Shown here: positions 5,956 through 58,436 of the stretch, in pieces | Position numbering within the stretch: position 1 is the first letter of the stretch | Layout: every line of letters begins with the position of its first letter | Sequence record: NC_042081.1 | Reading direction: 5' to 3' (one strand) | DNA: 64,000 bases | Translations under genes and position numbers: made by a program | Notes under the pieces: model-generated | What the model was told of the DNA's origin: nothing | The model's database searches: none | Seen by the model: the letters and a program-made list of their open reading frames with translations, nothing else

Positions 5956-7119
5956 ATGTCTACTAAATCACAACTACCAAAGAAAATCTTCAATGCGGCT
6001 AAGAGTGATTATCATCTACCAGAAATTATTCTTGGAGATGACCCAGGTCTACTAGATTCAATCCACACTCATTATCCTAAAATGTGGGACCTATATAAGC
6101 GTCTAAAAATGCTTGATTGGGATGAGTTAGAATTTGACTTTTCTACTTGTCTAGTAGAATTTGAAACATGTGATAAATCAACTTATGACATGATGATTAA
6201 GACACTGGCGTGGCAATGGGAAGCTGACTCTGTAGCCAGTCGTTCCATTGTTAATATTCTATCACCTGTCATGACTGATTCACGAGTATGGGCAGGATAT
6301 GTACGTATTAATGATAATGAAGACGTACATGCTTTAACTTATTCTGAAATTGTACGTAATAGCTTTAAAGATCCTAAAGTTATTCTAGATGAAATTCTTA
6401 GGGTAGAAGAAGCACAAGAACGGATGGTTGCAGTAGCCCGCACTATGGGTGAAGCACATGACGCAGTTCACGCGTATGCTCTTAATCAGGTACCCAATGA
6501 TCAAGAACTTTACAATAAGGTATTCATGTTCTTCATCGCTCTATATTTCCTTGAGCGTATTCAGTTCATGGCATCCTTTGCTGTGACTTTCGCTATTGGT
6601 CGCACCGGTGCATTCCAGCAAATTGCAGCTGCTGTTAAGAAGATTGCCCAAGACGAATTCGAAATCCATGCGCAATATGGCCAAGAAGTTATTCGTGCAC
6701 TACTAGCAACTGAACGTGGTAAACTCGCTTATAGTCAATGTAAAGATAAAATCATTGAACTACTATGGGAAATTGTAAAGACTGAAGTCACCTGGGTTAA
6801 TTATCTATTCTCTGAAGGTCGTGAACTAACTGGCGTTAATGCGACTAAACTTATTAACTGGGTACTTTTCAATGCTAATGCCGCAGCAACATTCCTAAGT
6901 GTTGAAAATGATATTGTAGAACAGTATCAAGTAGAGTTTAAAGAATCGGCTGGATTTGATTTTGTTTGGCCAGAGAAGAACCCACTTCTTTATATGGAAG
7001 ACTACCTAGATATTTCATCAACCCAAGCATCTCCTCAAGAAGAAGAGAAACCTGATTACATGGTTAACGTTGTGAATGATGTTGGCGAAGAAGAAGAATT
7101 CGAAGTGGATTTCATGTGA
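5956..7119 (+). CDS. nrdB: ribonucleotide reductase class Ia beta subunit
   Basis: WEADS, EDVHALTY, LERIQFMASF and DEFEIH di-iron ligand motifs; acidic C-terminal tail. Confidence 0.96.
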   Translation: MSTKSQLPKKIFNAAKSDYHLPEIILGDDPGLLDSIHTHYPKMWDLYKRLKMLDWDELEFDFSTCLVEFETCDKSTYDMMIKTLAWQWEADSVASRSIVNILSPVMTDSRVWAGYVRINDNEDVHALTYSEIVRNSFKDPKVILDEILRVEEAQERMVAVARTMGEAHDAVHAYALNQVPNDQELYNKVFMFFIALYFLERIQFMASFAVTFAIGRTGAFQQIAAAVKKIAQDEFEIHAQYGQEVIRALLATERGKLAYSQCKDKIIELLWEIVKTEVTWVNYLFSEGRELTGVNATKLINWVLFNANAAATFLSVENDIVEQYQVEFKESAGFDFVWPEKNPLLYMEDYLDISSTQASPQEEEKPDYMVNVVNDVGEEEEFEVDFM

Positions 7120-7532
7120 TGAATAAATTAATTCTTGTACTATCCTTAGTACTCGCATCTATGATTCTTGAAGCCAGTGAAATTAAAACAACCACTAATG
7201 GGATTATTAAACAAGTCGATTGCCAACTTGTAGCTAAAGATAATAGTATCGCTGGTGCAACTATTGGAGGTACCGTAGGAGCTGCTGCCGGTGCTGCGGT
7301 AGGTAAAGCACTTCTTGGTAAATCGGGTAGTTGGATTGGAGGTCTGATTGGTGGGGCAGCTGGCGGTGCTATCGGTAATAACATGGCTGCAACAGAAACT
7401 TACCAATGTAAGATGATCATTGAAGATCATGGTAAACTGTACATGAATCAAATCGTCACAAATAAGAAGTTAGAACCAGACATGTCTGTAACTATTGTAG
7501 AAATGTCTGATGGTACCTACGAAATAATGTAG
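7116..7532 (+). CDS. exported glycine-zipper protein
   Basis: N-terminal hydrophobic signal; GATIGGTVGAAAGAAVG and GGLIGGAAGGAIG GxxxG repeats. Confidence 0.8.
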   Translation: MMNKLILVLSLVLASMILEASEIKTTTNGIIKQVDCQLVAKDNSIAGATIGGTVGAAAGAAVGKALLGKSGSWIGGLIGGAAGGAIGNNMAATETYQCKMIIEDHGKLYMNQIVTNKKLEPDMSVTIVEMSDGTYEIM

Positions 7533-42750: not shown

Positions 42751-42779
42751 GTAATATAGATTTCAAAAAAAATTTAATG
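42751..42779 (-). promoter_or_regulatory. putative early promoter
   Basis: TATATTAC; 29 bp identical to 58408-58436. Confidence 0.75.
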
Positions 42780-42814
42780 TAAAAGCCCTCTCCTTTGGGA
42801 GAGGGTTTATGACT

Positions 42815-42922
42815 TTATTTATATTTTTTCTTATGAGTGTGATAAATATAGCTAAATAGCATACCGATTGACATTGATACAGCTACCATACCCACATAGA
42901 AAAGTTCATTACTAAGTTGCAT
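42815..42922 (-). CDS. small membrane protein (35 aa)
   Basis: Hand-translated [35 protein letters not shown]; GAGGA RBS; hairpin at 42785-42806 follows. Confidence 0.6.
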
Positions 42923-42982: not shown

Positions 42983-43002
42983 AGAGGACCCGAAGGTCCT
43001 CT
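42983..43002 (-). terminator. terminator of the periplasmic-protein operon
   Basis: AGAGGACC-TTCG-GGTCCTCT-TTTT. Confidence 0.8.
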
Positions 43003-43004
43003 AA

Positions 43005-43244
43005 TTATTTCTTATAACTCTCAGGGCATCCCATTTTGAGTTTGCCATCCTTTGGGTCTTCAGCGAATAATACTTCATCTGGACACTTCTTAACAGGAGT
43101 GTCCTTCGCCTTATCTTCCCATTCTACAACAGGCATTTCTAATTTCTTACGAAATTGATACGTATCATAAAGAACATACGTAATCATTCCCATAAGAGAG
43201 ATTACCCATACCCATGCAACAATTAGGATGATTCTAGTTATCAT
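43005..43244 (-). CDS. small membrane-anchored protein
   Basis: N-terminal TM; C-terminal C...C pair. Confidence 0.7.
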   Translation of the reverse strand: MITRIILIVAWVWVISLMGMITYVLYDTYQFRKKLEMPVVEWEDKAKDTPVKKCPDEVLFAEDPKDGKLKMGCPESYKK

Positions 43245-43611
43245 ACAACTCCTCGCCGACTATATTGAAACACCCATTACTGAGTTTTTCAGTCAGCATC
43301 TCACCAAGATCACTTCCCTCGCTCTTTGCCAAAAGCTTAAGTGCGGGATCAGTGAGATTTTGGTATATTACATCGACATTATCCAATGCGATATTAATAG
43401 CGAGTGCCTTATCACTCTGGTTTTTATCTATGGCAATGGATAGTTCATCTTGCAGTATTGCATACATCTCCAATGGCTCACCGCCATTAGTGTAGAATTG
43501 AACCATATTCTTTGCCAAGCTGTGCAGCACGTAGCAAGATGACACGGTTACGGGTTGTGCATTAACCGACATTGCTACCATAGTGATAATGAGCGAGAAG
43601 ACGTATTTCAT
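43234..43611 (-). CDS. secreted two-Cys helical protein (family member)
   Basis: Signal ...SVNA|QPVTVSSC; C-terminal NGCFNIVGEEL. Confidence 0.7.
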   Translation of the reverse strand: MKYVFSLIITMVAMSVNAQPVTVSSCYVLHSLAKNMVQFYTNGGEPLEMYAILQDELSIAIDKNQSDKALAINIALDNVDVIYQNLTDPALKLLAKSEGSDLGEMLTEKLSNGCFNIVGEELYDN

Positions 43612-43643
43612 CCTATTTTCCTTTTGAAAGTATTCGATATGAA

Positions 43644-44099
43644 TTAAATGAGTTCAACAATTACCATGTGAGTGAATTTCTCACCAATATGCTTCATGCA
43701 GTAATTGCCATAATACCCGCTGATAAAAGCTGCCAGATTAGGAGTAGTCACATTGTAACCTTGACTACGGATATAATCATGGATCTCTTTACTGTTAAGG
43801 TCATTATTGATTTTATTAAGACTATTGAATACGAATGTTAACGCAATCCAATTATTGGTATCCAACTCATCTTTGAGTTTAGCAGAGTTGTTGAGCATAA
43901 GCACACCAACTTCATCTGCGCTATGACCTTCACTCATTCGAAATACAGCTTGTTTAGTAATGGTTTCAACCATTGCACACGACTGCACAGTGAGTTGAGC
44001 ATCTTTTTTACCAATCTTGATTTCAGCCATTGCGGTATTGAACATGATACCGGTAATGGCAATGAGACCAGCGAAAGCTGCTGCAATTACATTTTTCAT
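43644..44099 (-). CDS. secreted two-Cys helical protein (family member)
   Basis: Signal ...TAMA|...LTVQSC; C-terminal NYCMKHIGEKF. Confidence 0.7.
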   Translation of the reverse strand: MKNVIAAAFAGLIAITGIMFNTAMAEIKIGKKDAQLTVQSCAMVETITKQAVFRMSEGHSADEVGVLMLNNSAKLKDELDTNNWIALTFVFNSLNKINNDLNSKEIHDYIRSQGYNVTTPNLAAFISGYYGNYCMKHIGEKFTHMVIVELI

Positions 44100-44116
44100 T
44101 TTAAATCCTTCTTCAT

Positions 44117-44500
44117 TTATTTAATGGTAAGAATAGTAATTTTTTCAGGATTTACTGGAACTTTAATTTTAGATTTATGTTGGAGAAACTCAACAACCAC
44201 CATAGACTTATCCATTTTATACACTTCACATACTTTGACAAGCCTATCTACTACGCAACCAATTTTACCGGCATTTTGAGAAAAGAAAGATTTTGCTTTT
44301 CTAATAGCCTCGCGTTTCTCAAGCATTTCCATATGCATATTTTCAATATGTTTATCGCGTTGAACACGATTAAACTTACGCATATGTCGTTCGATCTTAC
44401 TAATTTCAGAAGAGTGTAATGAATAAGCAGCAGCTTCTTTCAGTTTCTCATATACTTCCACTGCCATTACCACGTGATCATCTTCAAAATTTCTTTTCAT
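44117..44500 (-). CDS. hypothetical protein, coiled coil plus SH3/KOW-like C-terminus
   Basis: 127-aa ORF. Confidence 0.6.
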   Translation of the reverse strand: MKRNFEDDHVVMAVEVYEKLKEAAAYSLHSSEISKIERHMRKFNRVQRDKHIENMHMEMLEKREAIRKAKSFFSQNAGKIGCVVDRLVKVCEVYKMDKSMVVVEFLQHKSKIKVPVNPEKITILTIK

Positions 44501-44513
44501 ATCTATGCCTTTT

Positions 44514-45308
44514 TTACTGTTTGATTAAATTTGACACTGCTTCTTGTTTACATTGAGTATTCATCCATAATGCAATGTCTTTGGGTTCTTGTCCAGTTTC
44601 CACCATATCGATAATGATACGGGTATTACGTTGTGCTTTCTCACGGGCATTTAACATATCAGGATCATTAATAATGAATTCCCTACCCATAACTGGATCT
44701 AATCCAATATAAGCTTTAGATGCAATAGTTCTCACCATTGCTTCATATTGGTCACATCCACGTTCAGTTAATACAAGGTTATCTGCATTGGCACTACCGC
44801 CAAATAGCAAACCTAGGAATCCATAGAAAAAAGTGTGACGTATTGTCTTCCAACAAATACGCATCTCTTCATTTTTTGTATAAAGCTTTTCCCAATCAAA
44901 CATTAAATAGAAACTTTCTTTTTGGATAGAAGGGTGTAACCAAATAGGTTTAATACTTACTTCAAGAAGTTTACTATTTGGATTCTTACCGATAAAGATA
45001 ACTTCAACAATGGCTCGTGCTAAAGCATCTTTTTCTTTACCATTCCATCCAAATTTTATTTCATCAGCCGTAATGTAAAGACGTATTCCATCACCCACGT
45101 ATTTGGGTAACCAAACAGCTTTACCTAGTTGCACTGGAACATCATTAGGGATTCCCCCAACCATCCAGGTGGCCTTGGTGAAATGAATAGCAACATCATC
45201 ATTCAACCATTTTAGAATAGCTGGCCTTACCCAACTATCTACCAAATTACCACATGTCAATGCAGCTAGCATAGCCATGAGCATAATGACAATATAGATA
45301 CTAATCAT
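44514..45308 (-). CDS. membrane protein fused to a secreted two-Cys family domain
   Basis: N-terminal TM; internal signal-like segment ...GGSANA|DNLVLTERGC; C-terminal NTQCKQE. Confidence 0.6.
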   Translation of the reverse strand: MISIYIVIMLMAMLAALTCGNLVDSWVRPAILKWLNDDVAIHFTKATWMVGGIPNDVPVQLGKAVWLPKYVGDGIRLYITADEIKFGWNGKEKDALARAIVEVIFIGKNPNSKLLEVSIKPIWLHPSIQKESFYLMFDWEKLYTKNEEMRICWKTIRHTFFYGFLGLLFGGSANADNLVLTERGCDQYEAMVRTIASKAYIGLDPVMGREFIINDPDMLNAREKAQRNTRIIIDMVETGQEPKDIALWMNTQCKQEAVSNLIKQ

Positions 45309-45311
45309 AGT

Positions 45312-45671
45312 CTACTCCAAGTTAAATTTAGTACCAATTGCTTCAACACAATTTTCAGCTAACCTATCTAGGATAGCTCCATTGGTAAATCCTTTTCGTT
45401 TATTTACTCGAATATCAACTAAGTTTAACTTGGCATATACCGCACCTGCATAGAACTCCAAGTCATCCATATCCTTACGAGAGATCATGTCTAACTGCAT
45501 CATTATCTCAAATTGGGATAGGTTCTTATCATAAAGCTCAGTTGCTTTTTGTGAAAGATTTACTGCCACATTACATGATTTCTTAGTAATACCCACTTCT
45601 ACAGCGTGGGCAGGCTGACATGCAATGGACAGGATTGGCAGGAAAAGGAATAATAGCCAATTCTTAAGCAT
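45312..45671 (-). CDS. secreted two-Cys helical protein (family member)
   Basis: Signal ...PAHA|VEVGITKKSC; C-terminal ENCVEAIGTKF. Confidence 0.7.
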   Translation of the reverse strand: MLKNWLLFLFLPILSIACQPAHAVEVGITKKSCNVAVNLSQKATELYDKNLSQFEIMMQLDMISRKDMDDLEFYAGAVYAKLNLVDIRVNKRKGFTNGAILDRLAENCVEAIGTKFNLE

Positions 45672-45683
45672 GTTGTACCTCCA

Positions 45684-46091
45684 TTATTTTAGAGTAAGTG
45701 GTTTTGCTTCAAACGCACCTGCCGCTACACAACGCTGGAAATAACCATCAATGATGAATTTCTCAGGAGTGGTCTTATAGACTTTAGCAGCATTTGTTGC
45801 ACGTGGCAAACTTGCCTCAATTGCCATTTTATCTACCTTAGACCATAGGTAAAATAGACCAGTGAGTTCTTCAACTTTAGACTGGTTGGTCTTTAGATCT
45901 TTAGTGTTATTAAGGGTATAATGAATCCTTTCATAAGTCTTCATTTGCACTTCAGTTACAGATGCACCTTTTACAAACAATTCATCTGCCTGTTTTACAA
46001 ACTCGATGCATGAATCACGATTAGTGTACATGACAGCCGAGTTAGCAGTGATAGTTACAATAGACAACATAAATGCAATTACATATTTCAT
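45684..46091 (-). CDS. secreted two-Cys helical protein (family member)
   Basis: Signal ...TANS|AVMYTNRDSC; C-terminal QRCVAAG. Confidence 0.7.
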   Translation of the reverse strand: MKYVIAFMLSIVTITANSAVMYTNRDSCIEFVKQADELFVKGASVTEVQMKTYERIHYTLNNTKDLKTNQSKVEELTGLFYLWSKVDKMAIEASLPRATNAAKVYKTTPEKFIIDGYFQRCVAAGAFEAKPLTLK

Positions 46092-46117
46092 AATGAATTA
46101 CCTCAAAATTAATTTTA

Positions 46118-46381
46118 TTAACTATTGGTTTCACCACGAGTATTGAATTCTAAATCCAATACAACTTTAGTAAATTCTTCCAGTGCACCACCCTCGTAGA
46201 TGAGTGGGTCACTGTCACCCCGGTACATGCTACCTACCGGTACTTGACCACGAAACACCATCAGCATATCGTTTTTTACTATGACATGATGTTCATCCCC
46301 GACAGCAATGTCTTGGATGTGTCTCCAGCGTTCACGCAGTAAGCTGCAAGCGCACCATACGGATTTCAAACGTTCAGTCAT
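46118..46381 (-). CDS. hypothetical protein
   Basis: 87 aa; first gene after the promoter at 46415. Confidence 0.7.
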   Translation of the reverse strand: MTERLKSVWCACSLLRERWRHIQDIAVGDEHHVIVKNDMLMVFRGQVPVGSMYRGDSDPLIYEGGALEEFTKVVLDLEFNTRGETNS

Positions 46382-46414
46382 TGTATTGCCCTCTTGGTTA
46401 TTAAATTCATATTT

Positions 46415-46445
46415 GTAATATAGCTTTTTAAATAGTTTAAATACA
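46415..46445 (-). promoter_or_regulatory. putative early promoter
   Basis: TATATTAC at 46415-46422, downstream of the terminator at 46462-46481. Confidence 0.75.
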
Positions 46446-46499
46446 AAAAAAGATAAATAAAACCCTCCCCGAAGGGAGGGTGTATATTAAGTAATTATT

Positions 46500-47156
46500 T
46501 TAACATACAATTTCATTATCAGAAAATAGTTTATTATATTCTTTTAGTGCATCCCCACCAACCATAGTACACCTGCCATAGAGAACAGATATAGCCAGAT
46601 CTTTAATAGCGGGGTGACAATTATTTAACTTACTGATTAGTTGAGCTTTCTCAGTCAGATACAGTTCAGCAAAATCAGGCTTATCATTAACAATCGACCA
46701 CATGTTTGAAATGGAATCTAGTAACTTAAGAGATTGACCACTCCATGAAATGCGAGAAAGTCTTTCATGTTGTAAACTAATCCTAGTTTTACGATTACCT
46801 TCGTAAGTTACATTTGTTAGTTCAGTTACTAAATTAACAACAGGGATTGAGAATAGTTTAGTTAGATCAGAAGCAGTTACAGCAGTATCCTCAATTACAT
46901 CATGTAACCATGCTGCTTTATAAGCAGCGTGAGATAGGTCGAATAATTGCGCCATCTCAGCTACTTGTAATAAATGATGCCAGTAAGGTTTTCCTGAACC
47001 ATCTCGCAATTGACCAACAGCAGTATGTGCCGCAATGGCATATGATGCAGCCATTGCATTACCCGCATTGGAATATTTGCCATTACCTAGATGGTTAGTT
47101 AAGAGAATATTCTCTTTCCCTCCTTCTAGAATATCGATAATTTCATTCATTAGCAT
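46500..47156 (-). CDS. HD-domain small alarmone hydrolase (Mesh1/SpoT-HD-like)
   Basis: AIAAH..Q.RDGSGKPYWHH...V; AAWLHDVIEDT; LKLLD.ISN. Confidence 0.8.
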   Translation of the reverse strand: MLMNEIIDILEGGKENILLTNHLGNGKYSNAGNAMAASYAIAAHTAVGQLRDGSGKPYWHHLLQVAEMAQLFDLSHAAYKAAWLHDVIEDTAVTASDLTKLFSIPVVNLVTELTNVTYEGNRKTRISLQHERLSRISWSGQSLKLLDSISNMWSIVNDKPDFAELYLTEKAQLISKLNNCHPAIKDLAISVLYGRCTMVGGDALKEYNKLFSDNEIVC

Positions 47157-49485: not shown

Positions 49486-49515
49486 GTAATATATATCTCA
49501 AATAAAATTTAGTGC
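49486..49515 (-). promoter_or_regulatory. putative early promoter
   Basis: TATATTAC at 49486-49493 after the terminator at 49520-49539. Confidence 0.7.
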
Positions 49516-49914: not shown

Positions 49915-49945
49915 TTAGTAATATACTGTTAAAATATGTTTGAAT
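49915..49945 (-). promoter_or_regulatory. putative early promoter
   Basis: 31 bp identical to 711-741; terminator hairpin at 49967-49982 upstream. Confidence 0.75.
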
Positions 49946-58407: not shown

Positions 58408-58436
58408 GTAATATAGATTTCAAAAAAAATTTAATG
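58408..58436 (-). promoter_or_regulatory. putative early promoter
   Basis: 29 bp identical to 42751-42779; hairpin at 58443-58464 upstream. Confidence 0.75.

Follow-up and report, generated by a model that had tools for sequence, protein, structure and literature searches.

What does a jumbo phage address to the envelope of its host at the very start of infection? This question is raised by a group of small genes on the minus strand of a 64,000-nucleotide stretch of sequence record NC_042081.1 (the window), which is identical to Pseudomonas phage SL2, a phiKZ-like phage, and shares 99.2% identity with phiKZ across this stretch. Among nucleus-forming jumbo phages, phiKZ serves as the model, and OMKO1 and other close relatives have been studied for phage therapy; the nucleus, the vesicle and the cytoplasm have been the main subjects of work on phiKZ. 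An initial annotation of the window described positions 42983-46422 as an early operon of paralogous periplasmic disulfide-bonded proteins. The eight open reading frames that it placed there were confirmed in position and strand and match annotated genes of SL2 and phiKZ, in the order PHIKZ246.1, 247, 248, 249, 250, 251, 252 and 253, followed by 253.1; all of them are annotated as hypothetical proteins. The present analysis makes it very likely that the locus is an immediate-early transcription unit encoding a family of small helical proteins with predicted export signals and a predicted disulfide, and leads to a tentative proposal that the set closes the infected cell to further attack.

Predicted signal peptides and a shared two-cysteine architecture

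Five units of similar architecture are encoded in the locus, as the initial annotation had proposed. Four of them are whole proteins, namely gp247 (45684..46091, 135 residues), gp248 (45312..45671, 119 residues), gp251 (43644..44099, 151 residues) and gp252 (43234..43611, 125 residues), whose N-termini display a basic residue, a hydrophobic stretch of 10-15 residues and small residues at -1/-3. These export signals were called by inspection and hydropathy alone and carry less weight than the calls of a predictor would. The fifth unit lies within gp249 (44514..45308, 264 residues), in which an N-terminal membrane segment and a middle domain of about 125 residues are followed by a second, signal-like segment after Met149 (44784-44864, residues 149-175) and by a C-terminal two-cysteine domain (44517..44783, residues 176-264).

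Past each predicted cleavage site there are exactly two cysteines, the first at +8 to +16 and the second 11-17 residues from the C-terminus. They are found at +9 and +102 in the mature part of gp247 (116 residues), at +10 and +85 in that of gp248 (96 residues), at +10 and +78 in the C-terminal unit of gp249 (89 residues, after the internal Met149), at +16 and +109 in gp251 (126 residues) and at +8 and +96 in gp252 (107 residues). The first cysteine belongs to a T-x-x-[SG]-C motif in four of the five units; in the gp249 C-terminal domain it closes the sequence T-E-R-G-C at mature +6 to +10, and the second cysteine stands 11 residues before the end. A common ending, C-x3-[IV]-G-x-[KE], was found in gp248, gp251 and gp252, the number of units for which it had been claimed.

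Shuffled mature sequences reach the observed cysteine placement at p = 0.03-0.05 each (product ~8e-8), and hydrophobic N-termini occur in six of the eight unit genes against 6 of the ~107 other open reading frames (Fisher p = 6e-6), p-values that are only nominal because the position windows were chosen after the data had been seen. Conservation provides evidence that is independent of these shuffling tests. Among 21 relatives sharing 17-41% identity, the only invariant columns of the alignment are both cysteines and one glycine, and exactly two cysteines are present in every mature domain of the family (in 17 sequences and later in 21). The two invariant cysteines are most probably joined by a disulfide.

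Relatedness of the members and predicted fold

Plain BLAST comparisons among the putative paralogues gave scores near noise. In HHalign profile comparisons, reversed decoys reached 1% or less. The mature domains of gp251 and gp252 were aligned over 103 columns (89.6%, E 2e-6). In the same way, the gp248 family (17 sequences) was matched at full length to a merged profile of gp251, gp252, Psa21_333 and PS119XW_301 (89.6%, E 1.9e-6). By sequence, the homology of gp248, gp251 and gp252 is thus regarded as secure. gp247 was found to pair with PS119XW gp302 (HHalign 55%, E 1e-4), with which it shares the tail C-x5-F-[DE]-x-K-P-[LF]-T, and these two form a subfamily of their own. Compared with the rest, the profiles of gp247 and of the gp249 C-terminal domain stayed at decoy level and gave no sequence link.

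Structure models bridge some of these gaps. An AlphaFold2 model of mature gp248, built with the 21 family sequences, reached a predicted local distance difference test score (pLDDT) of 95.2 and a predicted template modelling (TM) score of 0.85. It contains helices at residues 7-25, 30-44, 48-69 and 74-87, flanked by strands at 2-4 and 92-94. In BFVD this model was matched to gp248 orthologues (TM 0.8-0.93), to a 151-residue entry (query TM score, TMq, 0.74; probability 1.00), to a 264-residue entry (85 columns, root-mean-square deviation 1.7 A, TMq 0.72), to Psa21_333 (TMq 0.64) and to further proteins of 201phi2-1, Phabio and PS119XW. From their lengths and related accession numbers, we infer that the 151-residue and 264-residue entries are gp251 and gp249 of phage PA02, which makes the gp249 C-terminal domain a probable member of the family by predicted fold. 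For gp247, the model of the mature part, a five-helix two-cysteine domain, is weak (pLDDT 66) and displays the same order of helices, with the cysteines in the first and last ones; its best non-self BFVD matches are the 151-residue, gp251-type entry and Phabio proteins (probability 0.97-0.99, TMq 0.56-0.59), and its membership is suggestive.

The description of the set as paralogous thus holds for gp248, gp251 and gp252 by sequence and for the gp249 domain by predicted fold, and is no more than suggested for gp247. Strong support was obtained for a family fold consisting of a 90-130-residue helical bundle, the first and last helices of which are closed by two short terminal strands.

gp248 as a probable lipoprotein and the topology of gp249

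In the gp248 family, the signal itself retains a further cysteine, within the sequence [LM]-x-[VTSI]-[GA]-C-Q-P (L-S-I-A-C-Q-P in gp248 itself, ahead of the 96-residue bundle with its predicted disulfide staple). The lipobox pattern was found in 13 of the 16 full-length gp248 relatives and its core [GA]-C-Q-P in 14, the pattern being a version of the PROSITE rule that is loose and also matches the helix-1 cysteine of gp252. A lipobox in gp252 was rejected, the matched residue being the conserved helix-1 cysteine. The Phabio orthologue of gp248 is named 'Lipoprotein' in UniRef. gp248 is probably a lipoprotein and, from the Q-P-[AS] that follows the cysteine and from what is known of lipoprotein sorting in Pseudomonas, would be expected at the outer membrane. 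In PS119XW, the annotated start of gp300 (L006:3908-4336) lies 24 codons 5' of the methionine that opens a canonical lipoprotein signal as in all orthologues, and this start is probably mis-annotated.

With regard to gp249, the C-terminal domain might have been made separately from Met149. The real starts of the unit each have a GGAG-type site 6-10 bases upstream. At Met149 there is no Shine-Dalgarno sequence at the usual distance, either in SL2 or in a divergent phiKZ relative recovered from Logan run SRR33991144 (L007, 72-96% identical). An independent internal start was therefore rejected, and the C-terminal domain is probably produced as part of full-length gp249. The internal segment is preceded by basic and followed by acidic residues, a charge pattern according to which the C-terminal domain would be periplasmic and the 125-residue middle domain cytoplasmic. 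With this topology, gp249 would be a family member that spans the membrane.

An immediate-early transcription unit

In RNA sequencing of phiKZ-infected PAO1, the genes from gp246.1 to gp253.1 stand at 0 at -2 min and at 207-495 at 2 min (PMC10914614 supplement). The 2-min values are 207 for gp246.1, 214-495 for gp247 to gp253 (214 for gp253 itself) and 324 for gp253.1, against 35 for gp246 on one side and 26 for gp254 on the other (PMC10914614 supplement). Because RNA is nil before infection, high at 2 min and low in both flanking genes, there is strong support for one co-ordinated immediate-early transcription unit extending from gp246.1 to gp253.1, and the earlier designation as an early operon is well founded. 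The level of the unit at 2 min is like that of known early genes.

The initial annotation had bounded the operon by a promoter at 46415 and a terminator at 42983. The start agrees with the RNA step from 35 to 207 at gp246.1: a candidate early promoter is located at 46415..46444 on the minus strand, with a TATATTAC core at 46415-46422 and an AT-rich upstream element, and it is preceded by the intrinsic terminator of the upstream gp246 unit (46462..46481, minus strand), which displays a GC-rich 8-bp stem and a T run. The proposed end did not stand. No fall of RNA is seen across the hairpin 3' of gp253 (42983..43002, minus strand; gp253 214, gp253.1 324 at 2 min), which was rejected as the end of the unit and is a leaky, partial terminator at most. 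RNA falls more than ten-fold only past a second hairpin (42786..42805, minus strand), from 324 in gp253.1 to 26 in gp254 at 2 min, and it is this terminator that closes the early unit, which continues through gp253.1.

The extended motif GTATTYAAA..ATTT(T)AAA..TATATTAC is common to 46415-46444 and to four other sites of the window, at 49918, 40066, 1218 and 714, and it also stands directly 5' of gp247 in L007. AT-rich early promoters are used by the phiKZ virion RNA polymerase (PMC8244752, PMC10914365). At 42751-42758, 49486-49493 and 58408-58415 (-), TATATTAC is preceded by a different element, ATTAAATTTTWTTTGARATC, and these sites form a second class. The one before gp254 goes with expression that is weak at 2 min and ten-fold up by 10 min. 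There would accordingly be two promoter classes sharing the TATATTAC core, of which the ATTAAATTTTWTTTGARATC type may be a later one.

Products, dispensability and selection

Products of gp247, 248, 249, 250, 251 and 252 were found by mass spectrometry in infected-cell lysates pooled at 10, 20 and 30 min. In Grad-seq, gp247 and gp251 are found in light fractions, as small soluble proteins are, while half of gp248 and 71% of gp250 are in the pellet and gp249 is somewhat heavier. The Churi homologue of gp248 was detected at 15 min (PMC11849849). Compared with L007, the genes of the unit show ratios of non-synonymous to synonymous substitution (dN/dS) of 0.07-0.23, like neighbouring genes, which indicates purifying selection; gp253 is the most conserved (96% identity) and gp250 the fastest-evolving (60% identity, dN/dS 0.23). 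No broken genes were met. Given the detected products and the constrained dN/dS, the genes are real and constrained.

In transposon sequencing of phiKZ, insertions were recorded in each gene of the unit, 4-15 according to one table and 8-33 according to a second (PMC12676376 supplement), where essential genes received zero (PMC12676376), and the unit sits in the long non-essential arm of the genome (PMC12676376). None of its genes is needed for laboratory growth on PAO1, in keeping with an accessory role.

A family confined to Pseudomonas jumbo phages

Searches of Pfam, PHROG function labels, NCBIfam, PADLOC and PDB sequences returned nothing for any of the eight proteins, in agreement with the earlier remark that no described family could be recognised. 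gp248 is the most widely conserved member: 16 other records hold relatives that share 25-39% identity with it, and every one of these records is a Pseudomonas jumbo phage, phiPA3, Phabio, Psa21, PS119XW and D6 included. For gp251, no relative was found outside Phikzvirus even at E = 1, and tblastn revealed no second site in any phage genome. Word-index protein searches reached close relatives alone. An exhaustive scan of 1.84 billion representative proteins gave only seven matches, from which two new gp248-type proteins were gained; one match, a eukaryotic ankyrin-repeat kinase, was discarded as a false positive, and no cellular homologue was seen among these representatives. As judged from these searches, the family is confined to Pseudomonas phiKZ-like jumbo phages, with one to five copies.

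In each phage examined, signal-bearing two-cysteine proteins adjoin the gp248 homologue, and in three phages they are downstream of an HD phosphohydrolase. The examined clusters hold one copy in phiPA3, one in Phabio, two in Psa21, three in PS119XW and five in phiKZ/SL2. Beyond these clusters, BFVD matches include a further Phabio protein (157 residues) and a further PS119XW protein (121 residues).

Many partial hypothetical proteins that are 85-91% identical to phiKZ unit proteins are recorded as Klebsiella pneumoniae and come from contigs 200-400 bases long (P0011-P0016, P0021-P0023, P0044, P0045, P0053-P0061). They look like jumbo-phage reads carried into Klebsiella assemblies.

Other genes of the unit and its neighbourhood

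The remaining genes of the unit are also on the minus strand. gp246.1 (46118..46381, 87 residues), the first unit gene in SL2 and phiKZ, is without a signal and has a PHROG of its own in the function-unknown class. gp250 (44117..44500, 127 residues) is likewise without a signal and soluble, and its residues 1-80 match phrog_18482, a PHROG of 195 residues and unknown function (E 7e-13). gp253 (43005..43244, 79 residues) has an N-terminal transmembrane segment and a two-cysteine C-terminal tail, and gp253.1 (42815..42922, 35 residues) has one transmembrane segment. In L007 (1862-1993, 5102-5315), the promoter, gp247 to gp253 and both hairpins are kept; gp246.1 and gp253.1 are missing and are therefore recent gains or losses at the edges of the unit.

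Small single-transmembrane proteins with a conserved C-x-[KR]-Y-P-L-[SG]-C tail are encoded after the family genes in PS119XW (gp303, L006:5348-5518) and Phabio (363, L004:4351-4506). They occupy the position that gp253 has in phiKZ and have no evident sequence relation to it.

Upstream of the unit, gp246 (46500-47156, minus strand) is an HD_4-domain protein whose labels vary from metal-dependent phosphohydrolase to (p)ppGpp synthetase and GTP pyrophosphokinase-like. It adjoins the gp248 homologue in phiPA3 and PS119XW and is a separate, weaker transcription unit in phiKZ.

Elsewhere in the window, a 137-residue open reading frame (7119-7532, plus strand) directly follows one of 387 residues (5956-7119). 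It displays a signal peptide and a glycine-zipper domain, matching Pfam Gly-zipper_Omp (E 4e-7, above cut-off) and, weakly and below cut-off, TraT. Its predicted product is another envelope-addressed protein of the phage, of a kind unrelated to the two-cysteine family.

What the set may do to the host envelope

There is strong support for transcription of the unit from an AT-rich early promoter no later than two minutes after the DNA has entered the cell. In the explanation that we favour, its members would be exported to different layers of the envelope. Their sequences suggest that gp247, gp251 and gp252 are soluble in the periplasm and that gp248 is a lipoprotein, probably located at the outer membrane; one copy would form the periplasmic end of inner-membrane gp249, with the middle domain facing the cytoplasm. 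By analogy with early exported proteins of other phages, the set may act on the host envelope soon after infection and thereby shut the infected cell against further attack. One route would be to bind components, on the periplasmic side, of the type IV pilus and flagellar machines that serve as Phikzvirus receptors; another would be to neutralise the wall-degrading tail enzymes of incoming phage. Different paralogues would have different targets. Infection by a Phikzvirus that is 99.9% identical in this region depends on type IV pili or flagella (PMC12915314), and the periplasmic parts of both machines would therefore be natural candidate targets. Closing of the envelope is our best guess because of predicted export at the start of infection, dispensability, lineage-specific copy number and the precedent of Sp, Imm, Llp and Cor. 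T4 Sp and Imm, T5 Llp, Cor and TP-J34 Ltp are early exported phage proteins that act in superinfection exclusion. The roles put forward in the initial annotation, namely superinfection exclusion, receptor or pilus blocking and protection of the infected cell from lytic enzymes, are still plausible. The function itself is put forward tentatively, with the balance somewhat against it, and the explanation as a whole, anatomy and function taken together, falls a little short of an even chance.

Several points weigh against this explanation. Among the homologues and structural neighbours of the family, there is none with a role in exclusion. T4 Sp, T5 Llp and Ltp are absent from the best 50 Foldseek PDB matches listed, and of the known exclusion proteins considered (Sp, Imm, Llp, Cor, Ltp, Sim) none was met among these 50 or in the PDB, Pfam, PHROG and NCBIfam searches. 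The nearest solved fold to the gp248 model, saposin, would point to lipid handling and not to protein blocking. Moreover, export, lipidation and the disulfide are predictions, the link to the gp249 domain passes through a BFVD entry identified by length and not by name, and gp247 is tied to the family by its architecture and a weak model.

That nearest fold suggests that a saposin-like bundle could open and bind or extract lipids (phospholipid, lipid A or lipoprotein acyl chains), which would remodel or reseal the envelope after tail puncture or alter the composition of the outer membrane. Each of the top five PDB matches of the gp248 model, which is a confident one, has a saposin fold (TM 0.5-0.69, probability up to 0.93), and these matches represent human saposin A, saposin C and nematode Na-SLP-1 (4uex, 2dob, 2gtg, 3s63); the predicted disulfide ties the first helix to the last as in saposins, gp248 itself is predicted to be lipid-anchored and a lipid-bounded vesicle opens phiKZ infection. 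However, small helical bundles readily match one another and the Foldseek E-values are just 0.6-1, the cysteines are two and not six, and there is no Pfam saposin match. Lipid handling is thus considered unlikely, and it is quite unlikely that the family represents the first saposin-like lipid-handling proteins of a bacterial virus, with gp248 at the outer membrane and gp249 providing a coupling to the cytoplasm. The hydrophobic segments might, on the other hand, not lead to export at all and instead serve as anchors or targeting helices that hold the bundles to the inner membrane from its cytoplasmic side, or to the early infection vesicle; both cysteines would then be structural or metal-binding. 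Export is indeed a prediction, early phiKZ proteins are made beside the lipid vesicle, and the presence of half of gp248 and most of gp250 in the Grad-seq pellet would be in line with such anchoring. Nevertheless, the signals have classic n-, h- and c-regions with small -1/-3 residues, the gp248 lipobox is conserved, gp247 and gp251 sediment like small soluble proteins, and two invariant cysteines at adjacent helix ends are the usual signature of an oxidising compartment, which leaves a cytoplasmic location very unlikely.

Two further explanations keep the proteins in the envelope and differ in what they would do there. The set may consist of periplasmic, immunity-like inhibitors that shield the infected cell from envelope attack by competitors or by the host, through wall-degrading effectors, pyocins or abortive-infection effectors that act on the envelope, and thus allow the phage to complete its long cycle. 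Several diverged paralogues in a non-essential, accessory region rich in host-interaction genes, immediate-early timing and a predicted periplasmic address would all suit such counter-weapons, which are nonetheless unlikely, as no PADLOC model or known immunity family was matched and no fold of a type VI secretion system (T6SS) immunity protein or lysozyme inhibitor appears among the best 50 Foldseek matches listed. The analogues named in the initial annotation (lysozyme inhibitors, HdeA and T6SS amidase-immunity proteins) were not borne out, none being present among these 50 PDB matches or in Pfam, NCBIfam and PADLOC. Finally, the proteins could sense secondary adsorption or damage to the envelope and signal it to the lysis machinery in the manner of the T4 antiholin RI, with gp249 as the relay through the membrane. 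Lysis-inhibition-like control has been proposed for phiKZ (PMC12894885), and gp249 would connect a family domain with another domain on the opposite side of the membrane. The lysis cassette of phiKZ, gp141-144, is however located elsewhere, the periplasmic part of its holin is small and its regulator gp143 is cytoplasmic, and five copies with immediate-early timing would be unexpected for an antiholin, so that a role in lysis timing seems highly improbable.

If the predicted addresses are right, phiKZ commits part of its very first transcription to envelope proteins of a family found nowhere else, the copy number of which differs between phage lineages. The unit would offer a defined, small and structurally tractable entry to early jumbo-phage action on the host envelope, which has hardly been studied so far, and would add a new variant of helical fold with a predicted disulfide staple to the periplasmic repertoire. 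The terms periplasm, lipoprotein, signal peptide and superinfection do not occur in a review of jumbo-phage biology from 2026; the unit genes are not mentioned by locus tag in paper texts, nor is the orthologue mentioned in the 201phi2-1 transcript paper.

Comparison with known systems

Saposin-like proteins and gp248 are both four- or five-helix bundles of ~80-100 residues in which a disulfide, a predicted one in gp248, joins the first helix to the last, its neighbour in the bundle. Superposition of the gp248 model on saposin A gave TM 0.60/0.69 and a root-mean-square deviation of 2.9 A over 77 columns, with an E-value that is not significant. Saposin-like proteins have three cysteine pairs and are found in the lysosome or in secretory granules, whereas the gp248 family has one pair, extra terminal beta-strands and a predicted location in the bacterial periplasm. 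No Pfam match to the saposin sequence families was obtained at E up to 0.1, and no saposin was present among the PDB sequence matches. Because the six defining cysteines and the sequence family are absent, gp248 is considered an analogue of saposins and not a member.

Among phage proteins, BFVD entries named 'Lipoprotein' from Burkholderia jumbo phage BcepSauron, a Sphaerotilus phage and an uncultured siphovirus are weak matches of the gp248 model (TMq 0.37-0.62), made by fold alone at E >=0.3. Like Ltp of the Streptococcus phage TP-J34, gp248 is an all-helical, phage-encoded envelope protein with a lipid anchor, which is predicted in gp248; unlike gp248, Ltp acts in a Gram-positive host, is composed of helix-turn-helix repeats and has no disulfide staple. 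T5 Llp and lambdoid Cor are lipoproteins that block the phage's own receptor, and gp248 is likewise small, early and predicted to carry a lipid and a disulfide. There is however no homology between them, and the fold of gp248 is predicted to be helical. In addition, the receptor is an outer-membrane transporter for T5 Llp and Cor, whereas Phikzvirus uses pili and flagella. T4 Spackle (Sp) and Imm are single genes, whereas the phiKZ unit holds a multi-copy family that has no PDB sequence match to either of them; in both cases, nevertheless, a large lytic phage makes the proteins early, and they bear export or membrane signals (predicted ones in phiKZ), act at the envelope (putatively so in phiKZ) and are dispensable in the laboratory.

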